A stretch of DNA of 64,000 nucleotides from Parasitella parasitica NRRL 2501 (taxonomy: Eukaryota; Fungi; Mucoromycota), in contig MU619367.1 in NCBI GenBank assembly GCA_025201805.1, positions 26,119 through 90,118 on the forward strand, given 5' to 3'. Shown here piece after piece: positions 25,861-30,810 of the stretch. Position numbers and translations under genes: made by a program. The notes beneath the pieces are model-generated. The model was not told where the DNA came from. It made no database searches and worked only from the letters and a program-made list of their open reading frames with translations. The stretch's first letter is position 1; the number at the start of each line of letters is the position of its first letter.

Positions 25861-27065
25861 CTAGAACAAGGTGAAGCCCAATAGAATAGTCATAATTAAA
25901 CATCCAAATGATGATCTAGGTGCAATACTTGAAGCGTTTGATTCTTGATTCACTTCTGTGCCGGGTAAGAGATGTCTATTCATAATATCTAGTAAGTATT
26001 GTCATGTAGTATTAGCAAAAACTGTAAATGCAGTAAAATAAATGCATCTGATTTACCAGAAATTTGACATGGCGTCTTTGATTTACTGCATGATGGAGGA
26101 GAATTGCTTTCGGAGGAATTGAAAAACAAGTTAAGGTGTGAAACCTTCAAATCTGCGTTTTCAGAAGGGGGGCCGCCACTGAAATAAGGGTTCCCGTCAG
26201 TCCAATGGTTCAAAAGAATTCTGCCTGGAGAATCAGGGACGTTGGTCGTCATCTCACGTACAAAGGTGCCATCAATGTAGAATTTAACTGCATTAGGCAA
26301 CCAGTCAAATCTGTATTCGTGGTAATCCTAAATATTCAAATGTTTTGTAACAGGGTACATGGTTAAGGCTGCTGTGTAGGTTTTACCTCAGTTGGATTGA
26401 ACGCTAGATCATGCTTTTCATTTGTTAGTGGAGACGCAGCGCCGTGGTCGTATATTTGGGGTTGGATAGCAAAATAAGTCTTGTATGGATCATGAAAACG
26501 GCTAAGTGATTCCATATCGATTTCGCTAGTATCATTGCGATAAAAGAAGAAAGCAGCTACAGTACCCGCAACATTGCTTGTCTTCATACGAGCGCGATAG
26601 GTACCATATAAAAAGTCGCTCCTGAAAGAAGCATTGGGGTTAGCTTTGAAATAATGCATATTTAGCAATATTCTACCTTTTTGTTCCAATTGCCGCAGAC
26701 GTGTATTTGCCATCGCTGTTTTGCTTGACAGATAGAGTAATACCGCCTTCGTGTGTCAATTTAACATTGCTGGGTGAAAATACGCGCGCAAGAGTATCCT
26801 TATGTTTTGCTCCTACTGTGTAGTCCATGACAAGGTAGTGTGGGTCATATTGTAAACTTGATTTATACAGGCCATAGTCGGCATACCAGATGTCTGTCCA
26901 AATATTGTGATTTTCGTCTTCAAATCCACAATCACAAACGACAGCTTCGCTCAGATTAATTGTTTTTTGCTTTGATGTTGGATCTGTGTTGTCATTTTGA
27001 GGTTTTTGCCCATGACTAATATGGCAAAAAACTGCCACTACTAATAAAATTGGCCAAATGTGCAT
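25861..27065 (-). CDS. GH16 glycoside hydrolase, secreted, likely GPI-anchored
   Basis: Signal peptide, YGTYRARMK, SEIDMES (ExDxE), YHEYRFDW, NHWTDG; hydrophobic C-terminus. Confidence 0.9.
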
Positions 27066-27543
27066 TCTTTTTTGACTCAATTCCTCGAATATGTGAAGGA
27101 AAAAGAAGGAAATATATGATAAACTTGCACATTTTAAAGAACATACCGAGTTCTTTTTCGTATGGTCTAAAAACAAACAAACCTTCAAGATTGAAATTTG
27201 TCCTGCTGATAATGCTTGGTTAATTCATATTTAGAAATGATTTACAGGATTGCCATCATACGCTAAAGATATATAGCAGACTTTGTCTTTGGCATCTATC
27301 TAGTGCCATGATCCTTACGGAGCAATAATTTAAAGTCATTTGATCATTATCCTCCTGTATTGACAACATATTACATATCTAGAAAAACAATATATCAATA
27401 ACAAACAAACAGCTGTTTGTGCACATATACCATGGTCAAATAAGCTTCAAGTAGTAAACAATAATACAGAAAACATGTCTGGAAATAAGGTAGCATGTGA
27501 TTGTACTTTTATTGGCTTTATTCTAAAAGTCTTTATTCTTTTA

Positions 27544-27717
27544 GAGCATCTCCAACGGAGATGCTAATTTTACAAAATTTCCAAAAGAAAATTGGTGAGA
27601 GGATAATACTTTCTTTTTTTTTTTTAGACAATTTTACTCGCCTGTAATGGTGTATAGGATAAACCGAATACCCACGGCGTATCAAAGAGTAATATCAATG
27701 ACACACAATGCTTGCAA
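27544..27717 (-). ncRNA. Candidate Fanzor omegaRNA scaffold region
   Basis: Lies between the Fanzor stop and the element end; nested stem 27634-27692 and terminal 9-bp hairpin 27545-27565. Confidence 0.4.
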
Positions 27718-27901
27718 TTATTCTTTTGATCCAGAACGCTGGAATGGTGAAAGACGAGCGTCATTGTTTCTTACTGCATAAAAAAATATGTTGACACTGT
27801 AATACAGAATGTACTCTTCGCTTTGCTGATCGTTGCACAACGTTTTCAACATTTCTTTTTTTGCAGTTGTTGCAGACTTGACTGGTGAGGTATTCGTCTA
27901 G
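27718..27901 (-). pseudogene. Fanzor (eukaryotic TnpB) C-terminal remnant
   Basis: Manual translation LDEYLTSQVCNNCKKRNVENVVQRSAKRRVHSVLQC (RuvC-II Glu plus Zn ribbon), then a shifted frame NIFFYAVRNNDARLSPFQRSGSKE*; WNRD segment missing. Confidence 0.8.
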
Positions 27902-28081
27902 GCTACTGAGAAAAAGTGGGTGCTAGAAAAGGGGGATAATAGATGGTCCTGTGGATAATAAATATTCCGAGTGGTTATGGGGGGTACTGAAATAATTTAT
28001 GCAAAAACATTATCGTTTCATGATCTGACAAGTCTTTTTATTCAAAAGCTTCGAAAATATACATAATTTATTATTAAAGTT

Positions 28082-29193
28082 TTATTCAATTTTTTTATAA
28101 CAAACGTACACGGTATTCTCTGTATACTTTGAGATTTTTGCCGCTCTTTCATGATCAAATGTAATTGGAATAATGGCTTCGTCAATATTATCAATCTTTA
28201 CGAGACACAGTCTACCGGAAATCATCTTATAGCAAACTGTATGAAAATGGCTACCTGTAGCTGTAGCTGAATAAACTCGTGCATGCAGACAATATGTGGC
28301 AGATTCATGGAGTCCATTTCCAAACGATATTTTGAAAGTCTTGGGGAAGTATACATTGCCTTTGTTTTCACGAATTAAGCTGAAGTTGCACATGTCCATC
28401 ATGAAAAGAAATCGAGTAATGTAGCAAATTTGTTCTTTCTAGTCATTTTGCTTTTACAAATGTCGTCGTAGTCGCATCGCTTTTCTTCTACCGCATAAAT
28501 ATATCTTTGAAGAAATATTTCAGAAAACTTCTCTTCCAATTTAGCTTCATTATGATAGCTATTTGCAGACAAGCTTTGGTAAAGATCCAACCATACGCCA
28601 ATAAGTCTGGCTGGTTGAATAACATCAGTATAATTGTAACCAGCATTGCACTTCTTGTTCGAAAAAATTGTACCAGGATCTACACTTATCATAGTTGCTA
28701 GCTCAGGAGACAACTCATTCATGATCTTCCGAAAAACAGAAGCACAGCAAGCTTGCTCTCCTTTTCGAAACAGTAGATTTCTTTTGGCGTCTTTCAGACT
28801 CCAAACAAAGTTTCTTGCCATCAAAGTTGCCTGGTCTGTCGAATCCTTCTTTTGTTCGCGATACAATTTAAATGAATCCAGTAGACATTTATCATATGGA
28901 TTTTTTGAGGAATGGACGTGGTACCCTGAGAGATCAACGAACGGAAGTACGGCATTCCAGAGAAGCTCCAGGTTAGCGTCAATGAAGCAGGCATTTTGTG
29001 AGTTAACCTTAATATACGAGTAGAATTTGGGCTGCTCACAGATGGAAACCATTGGAGTGAAATTAACCTGAGACACTAGTGACCTATAATCCATTAGTGG
29101 CGGTTCAGATTCTTCAAAAAGAGTGTTGACAGCCCTTTTAGGAGGTATCTTCAACTGTTTTTCAGAAGACTCCAATAAGAATTCTATATCCAA
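28082..29193 (-). pseudogene. Divergent USP/C19-like cysteine protease split by a 1-nt frameshift at ~28400
   Basis: Cys box VNSQNACFIDANLELL, GEQACC box, His box YCLHARVYSATATGSHFHT, KIDN, terminal VYVCYKK. Confidence 0.7.
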
Positions 29194-30329
29194 TTTGCAG
29201 TTTGTAACAGCTTCAGAGCGTTGATAGTATTTTTTTCAGTTACAGAGATATTTGTTTCTGATTCAGCTGCAGGTTGTCGAGATTGAGAAGCAAGATTTAG
29301 TTTGTATAATGGGTGGTTTACAGTATGAAGAAAAAATATTATTTATATACCTTGAAACAACCTTTTTATATCACTGTCTAAGTCTTTTTCTTGAATTTAG
29401 GTTGCAGGCTCAACTATCATCAACCCTCCAGCTTCGTTTCTAAAGCCATCCAGTGGGCTTCGAAGCAAAGTCCAGACATCCAAAGAGAAAGCAGATTATT
29501 GGAGTGCCAATGATTTCAAGACAATGAGCCGCGATCAAGTCTCAGCACTTGCAATTGGTCTTGCTGGTCTCGGTTGCCTTTTGTTTGGAGTAACTTTCCC
29601 CTGCTTCGACCAAACCCCACCATTGCCAAGCGCACACAATTTAACAATTTAGCCCTATCTTTTTTGTACAGAAAACGGATACTGGGCTCGCCTTTCGATG
29701 GAGGCACTACTCTTTGAAGATTAATAACAAATATGAAAAGTGGGGATAACTCAATACTAATCCAGCGCTGCATCTTTATTTTTGACCTTTTTATACTATT
29801 GGAGAAGTGATATTTCGATTTATAAGTTGTTTATAAAAAGTAATCAAAATCATCTGTTTCTTCTTTTGATATTTAGCTTGCTATGCTCTTACAGTAAATC
29901 AGATGCGTAGAAAATGTGAAATAAAAGTTACAAGGAAGGAGTTGTATCGACCATACAGAAGAAGGTTGGTGGCCGTGGTTGGTTTCAGTTTGGCGCACAA
30001 AAACATTAGGGCGTTGGTTGCTACAGACATTAACCTAAAAGGCATTTTTTGCATTAACCAATTATCCTGATTATAATATTTTGTAATGGTATCGTACGAA
30101 TGGTAATATTCATTTAAACTTTTCTTTTTTTTTTGTCTCCCAGATGTATCAACAGCGATGATAATATCACAAACTCAGGGTCGACAACCCAAACCTAACA
30201 ACCTTTGTCAATATCGTCTATTTCTTCTTGACGGCAAGGTAGAAGAGAAAACAGATAGAATAGACGTCAGTAGTTATTACGTTGCTAAATACAAATTAAA
30301 CCAAGTCTAAATAAAACAAATGTATACCT

Positions 30330-30810
30330 CAGGACAGACTCGCTTTTTTTGCCTGCCGGATATCCTGGCACACCAGACGTTTTCACTAATTTCCAAAAGG
30401 CTTGTGCATCAACTCTATACAAGAGCATGGAATCAGTGCGTTTAATTTTTTCCGGGCTCAAACGTCTTGTCAGACAGCTTGCTTGTTGATCGCTCTTGAG
30501 TGGTTAGATTGCAAGAAGAGCACCGTTTTTCTTTTTCGCTTCTACTGTCTTCAATTCTAAATTGTAGCAAAGCACTCTTCTTAAAGCACTTTTTGGTAAG
30601 ATTCCAATGCAATTATCTTATATTCTTAACCTCAAGCAATTTTGATTCGTTCGAATTGATTTATTTCCATACAACATCAACGGGATTTATCAAAAGTTGT
30701 GAGCTGCATGAATCAACCTTGTCAGATTTTTCAAGCTCCATTCAAATCATATCTGTTCCTGAGATCTGGGATTCCACACCCTACCAGATCTTTCCGCTCA
30801 TCTATAAATG
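30330..30810 (-). pseudogene. Degraded coding remnant of unknown family
   Basis: Minus-strand frame with coding-like composition but repeated stops, following an intron-like acceptor. Confidence 0.2.

Follow-up and report, generated by a model that had tools for sequence, protein, structure and literature searches.

A 357-bp sequence at 27900-27544 (-) of the window, that is the whole stretch of 64,000 nucleotides from Parasitella parasitica NRRL 2501 that was analysed (assembly GCA_025201805.1, contig MU619367.1, positions 26,119 to 90,118 of the forward strand), comes from a Fanzor1 transposon with multiple copies, of which it is the 3' tail. It is very probably the ordinarily decayed 3' fragment of a non-autonomous PIF/Harbinger-type element, whose only cargo is a multi-exon Fanzor1 gene. 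A dead fragment as such is ordinary, the non-coding end of its family is less so.

Identity and lesions of the remnant

The first-pass annotation had recognised a Fanzor remnant on the minus strand in two frames, and both peptides are found where it had placed them, at 27901-27791 and at 27790-27718. The upstream part (27791..27900, -) codes for RuvC-II (DEYLTSQ) and a zinc ribbon with three of its four Cys, as judged from translation, sister-copy matches and alignment, whilst translation and alignment identify the downstream part (27718..27790, -) as the Fanzor1 C-terminus with its stop codon at 27720-27718. Between them, at 27790..27791 (-), lies the junction of a frameshifting deletion that took the fourth Cys and WNRD/RuvC-III, a loss that had been proposed from the letters alone. 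Pairwise alignment to the full-length copy on contig C70 puts it at 59 bp, out of frame, with microhomology at the junction of a 2-nt AA and no more. In total 37+24 codons (61) are left in two frames, with no start and no REC, WED or RuvC-I.

The remnant is not a product of chance, because the same 32.8-Mb assembly holds 36 protein and 55 DNA matches to it; it is 93-97% identical to its sister copies. The matches include tails that span both halves of the remnant and are continuous through LQCQ-ETAC-NIIWNRDIMAAKNIL-NIFL, rather than unrelated zinc ribbons, and as these copies read through both the fourth Cys and WNRD, the two motifs are truly absent from the window copy. A 41-aa piece of the remnant matches PF07282 weakly (E 0.003), the intact tails of the family, here called family A, are above the cut-off of that model. 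A profile built from 13 family tails found GtFz1 as the best match in the PDB (E 1.3e-7), followed by TnpB and SpuFz1 (~0.01), with PpFz1 not matched; PDB searches with the N-terminal and RuvC-I exons gave no match. The assignment to Fanzor1 is thus upheld. In the DEYLTSQVC of the window copy the RuvC-II E is six residues before the zinc finger, which is the Fanzor arrangement (PMC13565253).

Everything upstream of about 27905 had been thought lost, and the break is now placed exactly at 27900/27901, the first 'L' of LDEYL taking one base from the neighbouring element where the parent codon is V. At the other side the first reading had stopped too early, as the remnant extends past the stop codon to a right terminal inverted repeat (TIR) at 27567-27544. 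The window copy has the catalytic E and three Cys only, so that the RuvC triad D-E-D and the four-Cys ribbon are incomplete, which lowers the case for function and not that for ancestry. With RuvC-III missing and 61 codons remaining in two frames, the view that the copy is nuclease-dead stands. No left half of the Fanzor element was found in the window, nor a left TIR there or on the contig, and the copy therefore cannot move. It makes no nuclease and is most likely inert, as would be expected from the lack of its own promoter and a GT-to-GC change in a putative splice donor.

The parent family and its decay

The full-length unmasked copy on C70 is 3,655 bp long, is flanked by a TAA duplication and carries a multi-exon Fanzor1 as its only cargo. 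Its TDG, RuvC-I, RuvC-II, zinc ribbon and WNRD are present, the gene itself is frameshifted. The Fanzor1 parent has a long N-terminal REC/WED region, introns and a transposon context, all of which the window copy has lost; DPG, DEY, WNRD and the four Cys are all found in family A, spread over different copies. The left and right ends of the element are inverted repeats of 24 bp, with 58 genome matches to the TIR pattern against 0 for a reversed control, and a matching TAA or TTA is found on both sides of nine out of ten complete elements. In the window the right TIR (27544..27567, -), recognised from TIR pairs and its fold, is 24 bp, is itself a 9-bp hairpin and is of PIF/Harbinger type; the right target-site copy, TAA (27541..27543, -), is assigned from the same tally of duplications. 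This hairpin was at one stage considered to be a Helitron end, a reading dropped once the left TIR and the target-site duplication (TSD) were found.

A TAA or TTA duplication together with a short TIR starting GAGCATCTCC or GGGCATCTCC is the signature of PIF/Harbinger elements. Non-autonomous members and Tourist-like MITEs have the same short TIR starts and the same duplication, but in family A the DDE and Myb-like pair is replaced by Fanzor1. The unmasked sequence between family A TIRs revealed no Harbinger transposase, the C70 element holding Fanzor exons only, and the seven matches to PF13359 (DDE_Tnp_4) in the genome are none of them beside a matching TIR. As no transposase is tied to the family A TIRs, it is from the ends that the superfamily is called. 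A mariner transposase lies adjacent to the copy on C64, on its upstream side, and was set aside as a possible partner. Four MITEs of 586-637 bp (L072-L075, on C46, C112, C37 and C116) have the same 24-bp TIR and TAA duplication, with an interior unrelated to family A, and may trace an autonomous Harbinger partner.

Most family A copies are internal-deletion derivatives of 1.5-2.1 kb, with many different breakpoints in a deletion map of 33 copies. RuvC-III has been lost independently in L002, L018, L021/L025, L026 and L037, most of which also lose other parts. Since sister copies lose RuvC-III along with other parts at different breakpoints, the loss in the window is very probably ordinary decay and not adaptive. 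The first-pass annotation had described RuvC-III as cleanly deleted: the deletion is real, but it is frameshifting and not special, at least five other copies having lost RuvC-III at other breakpoints. It had also expected an intact relative to exist or to have existed, of which the second holds; no intact copy is visible now, and the only unmasked full-length one is frameshifted. Among the visible sequence the copy with the best long frame, on C45, has an E-to-K change in the RuvC-II of its tail, the C64 copy has a frameshift in its tail, and several long copies contain N runs of ~3 kb. Open frames of 830-1,124 aa in family A copies are artefacts of such runs.

Other Fanzor1 families and horizontal transfer

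Family A is not alone, with at least eight Fanzor1 families coexisting in the genome, nearly all decayed, and 73 genome matches to PF07282. In a tree of tails family A falls in an unresolved group among mariner-ended families. One of the other families, family B, has a tail 46% identical to that of family A, long TIRs, a TA duplication and mariner-type ends. Its copies (L054-L059 and L063, on C188, C104, C158, C4, C25 and C46) are 97-99% identical to each other, several keep intact DEYLTSQVC and WNRD, and a Parasitella parasitica protein matches the family at 95% identity. Judged from these sequences, in which the 5' parts are masked, family B would be the most promising source of an active enzyme. 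A metagenome scan with the family B tail gave no match. A Fanzor1 relative at L082:795-3414 (Logan SRR27489474) has frames of 518, 112 and 179 aa collinear with the family A parent and stands behind a decayed Tc1/mariner transposase; its multi-exon gene is apparently uninterrupted, and is a candidate for biochemical work.

Fanzor1 in the transposons of Mucorales has been known since 2013 (Bao and Jurka; ROr, PBl, MCi; PMC3627910). These elements, like family A, are non-autonomous, carry Fanzor1 only, have borrowed TIRs and are present in many decayed copies. Their Harbinger-linked family, MCi-5 (PMC3627910), has a Harbinger transposase, no TIRs and 6-bp TSDs, whereas family A has 24-bp TIRs, 3-bp TWA TSDs and no transposase; a 2026 review lists Harbinger among the host elements of Fanzor. 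Compared with the Fanzor1 of GtFz1 (9CER), SpuFz1 (8GKH) and PpFz1 (PMC10432273, PMC11423790), the family parent shares the RuvC-II E six residues before the zinc finger, CxxC..C..C, WNRD, TDG and DPG, as well as introns, carriage by a TIR element and a predicted 7-bp stem-loop 1 (SL1) after the stop codon. It differs in being distant from all three solved proteins (PpFz1 is unmatched), in that the window copy has just 61 codons and in an omegaRNA region that appears, by prediction, to contain an intron.

A 1.1-kb fragment from Cokeromyces recurvatus is 88-92% identical to family A copies, introns included, with a dS of 0.15-0.19 over 228-268 codons, against a saturated neighbouring host gene, DLIC (pS 0.75 over 397 codons, the one host gene compared). 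This large difference between element and host gene suggests that family A has moved horizontally between genera of Mucorales. Parasitella is a mycoparasite of Mucorales (PMC11423790).

A predicted intron in the omegaRNA region

Downstream of the stop codon a predicted omegaRNA SL1 (27678..27705, -) has a 7-bp stem and a conserved 14-nt loop, is supported by an 11-sequence alignment and forms in the MFE structure. This alignment covers families A and B together with seven loci of other Mucorales, sequences whose relatedness inflates the shuffle test. In it 96% of cells are paired, compared to 4-58% for slid controls, and two-sided changes occur at four of the seven pairs. All three solved Fz1 omegaRNAs carry a 7-bp SL1. 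An extra hairpin (27650..27676, -) is present in family A and one JGI relative, and absent from mariner-type relatives. The host flank at 27525..27540 (-), where the copies diverge, would supply the guide of any omegaRNA produced here, going by the SpuFz1 layout (PMC10432273).

Between scaffold and flank there is a predicted spliceosomal intron of 78 nt (27564..27641, -), with a donor CAG/GCGAGT (the slash marking the splice site), a branch-like CTCAC at 27599-27595, a pyrimidine tract and an acceptor TTAG at the inner edge of the TIR. The donor is GT in most sister copies and GC in the window copy. Across families a TACAG-like motif downstream of SL1 is followed by a splice-donor hexamer, which is within one mismatch of GTRAGT in 11 out of 15 loci scored, compared with a background of 1.2% where the motif occurs in the window, a comparison whose anchors were picked by eye and that carries no formal p-value. 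The four exceptions are decayed forms, including the GC of the window copy, and the same donor layout is seen in families with very different proteins. The distance from the element end to an inner AG is 8-12 nt for mariner-type ends and 20 nt for family A. The spans from donor to acceptor are 76-84 nt, or longer with AG/GT sites every ~60-120 nt, mostly near 80, and in family A donor, branch and acceptor lie within 76-78 nt, a host-like spacing. Ranked as a partner for the terminus plus TSD, the exon end comes within the top 8% at 8 of 14 loci, a pairing that fits the TSD as a possible part of the scaffold; most mariner-type families pass this duplex test and family A fails it (rank 0.64-0.70), having a TIR hairpin of its own.

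On balance, these signals favour the idea that the Fanzor1 omegaRNAs of Mucorales are built by the spliceosome, with one or several 80-nt introns, possibly recursive at AG/GT, removing the subterminal and TIR DNA and so joining the scaffold to the last 8-20 nt, the TSD and a host-derived guide. It is possible, if rather doubtful, that the signals are instead coincidental, with AG/GTAAG as the direct repeat that the transposase binds in mariner TIRs, and with one long unspliced RNA as the omegaRNA. The inner AG/GTAAGC sites do sit in TIR direct repeats in family B and in families C77 and C21, no splicing is needed for the exon end to form a stem with the element end, the published Fz1 omegaRNAs are unspliced and an AG close to an end is frequent by chance. 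The first donor, however, lies outside the mariner repeats and varies between canonical forms (GTAAGT, GTGAGT, GTATGT, GTAAAT, GTAAGC) in families whose downstream DNA is unalignable. Such repeats are absent from family A, which nevertheless has a donor, a branch-like site and an acceptor at a spacing of 76-78 nt. The donor background is only 1.2%, and the spans come in units of ~80 nt.

The omegaRNA of PpFz1 obtained from yeast has CAG/GTAAGC ~13 nt after SL1, in the place of the predicted donors (PMC11423790 Table S3), and if the guide is indeed spliced this RNA may be the unspliced form. Its pattern had no match in the assembly, and a literature search for a spliced Fanzor omegaRNA found no paper. 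There is a parallel with the IStrons, which combine TnpB with a group I intron (10.1101/2023.11.20.567912), and in which splicing and omegaRNA signals likewise overlap at the right end. Self-splicing of an IStron removes the whole element and competes with the omegaRNA, whereas the predicted intron here is of spliceosomal type, internal, and would build the omegaRNA. If guides are spliced in this way, the window fragment preserves the design in a dead state.

Surroundings of the locus

The 5' break of the Fanzor remnant coincides exactly with the terminus of an unrelated TIR element (27901..29398, -), of which the right part is present, with a TIR of ~37 bp starting GG and a weak UCH-like ORF. 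This UCH/USP-like element is low-copy, its TIR starts GGCTACTGAG, and further copies are found on C6 (L065), C24 and C31, that on C6 containing an L1-like fragment. Its ORFs are on the same strand as the Fanzor remnant and end ~180 bp from it. Two further Fanzor remnants, unrelated to the first, lie within 3 kb upstream. One is a tail of another family (29393-29896, +) that reads ..MSRDQVSALAIGLAG.., has at least 35 copies, ends at TA and has relatives with EHNTSQTC..CRD; its sister copies have a GTAAGT donor, a span of ~76 nt and an AG 18 nt from the end. Tail to tail with it is the other (29892-30583, perhaps to 31594, -), which has kept a RuvC-I region and the C-terminal tail and lost RuvC-II/III. 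Its ~80% DNA identity to a Phycomyces blakesleeanus locus (L086) raises the possibility of another horizontal transfer. On the downstream side a GH16 glycoside hydrolase gene (26363-27188, -; PF00722, E 1.5e-10) starts ~400 bp from the Fanzor1 remnant on the same strand. What lies upstream of this gene is an accumulation of dead elements.

Could such a fragment still act? One improbable suggestion is that it is a ghost locus, its protein dead, with a remnant omegaRNA made by read-through from the upstream element, loaded in trans on the Fanzor of another copy and guiding that Fanzor to the host flank. SL1, the TIR hairpin and the TSD are intact in the remnant, the ORFs of the upstream element run on the same strand and stop ~180 bp away, and ghost omegaRNAs are known to function with SpuFz1 (PMC10432273). 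Against this, the promoter is lost and the donor is GC, no visibly intact family A protein is found in the genome, and the 93-97% identity to sisters is typical of dead copies with no extra conservation. The ghost Spu-1 loci (PMC10432273) likewise have no functional ORF and retain the 3' scaffold, TIR and flank, but they have both TIRs, are amplified and are conserved as a class, whereas the window remnant is a one-off truncation with no left TIR.

It was also considered that the remnant is part of a composite Harbinger element (27544-29888) with Fanzor and USP-like cargo, as a GAGCAT hexamer with TAA before it is found at 29888. This is highly improbable and was rejected: the hexamer is part of the other, multi-copy Fanzor family on the plus strand, 8 nt in from its right end, and other copies of that family are without it, the UCH-like segment has a TIR of its own and is found at other sites with no Fanzor attached, and no second copy of the arrangement was found in the genome. 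Domestication as a nuclease-dead, TldR-like RNA-guided binder, with adaptive loss of RuvC-III and regulation of the GH16 gene, is scarcely credible and already largely refuted, for all that the remnant lies ~400 bp upstream of that gene on the same strand, as its 37+24 codons in two frames have no start and no REC/WED/RuvC-I, and the deletion is out of frame and private, with like losses scattered among dead copies.

Proposed history and significance

Ordinary decay of a mobile Fanzor1 element would have the following history. A Harbinger transposase acting in trans would have inserted the element at a TAA site ~400 bp upstream of the GH16 gene. Repair of a double-strand break, using little microhomology or none, would then have removed 59 bp including RuvC-III, as it may have done independently in many sisters. 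Next, a second TIR element would have inserted in RuvC-II, and the left parts of the two elements would have been lost later on. While the family was alive, the 80-nt intron may have been spliced out first, bringing scaffold and guide together, and the protein would have bound an omegaRNA from the 3' end of the transcript, consisting of the SL1 scaffold, the TIR hairpin, the TSD and ~15 nt of host flank as guide. The Fanzor1 would have cut empty donor sites, promoting homing.

What the family adds is modest, a Fanzor1 framed by canonical ends of Harbinger type and a horizontal transfer that is likely to have taken place between genera of Mucorales. For these ends, and for what is probably a spliced guide RNA as read from sequence, the locus deserves to be retained as an example of its family. 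An intron-containing omegaRNA, if true, would be a new way of making guide RNA and would outweigh the other points. It would uncouple the scaffold from the end of the host transposon, and would account for the passage of Fanzor1 between mariner and Harbinger shells. The working scaffold for fungal Fanzor editing tools would then be the short form left after splicing, and heterologous expression in budding yeast may fail to yield it.
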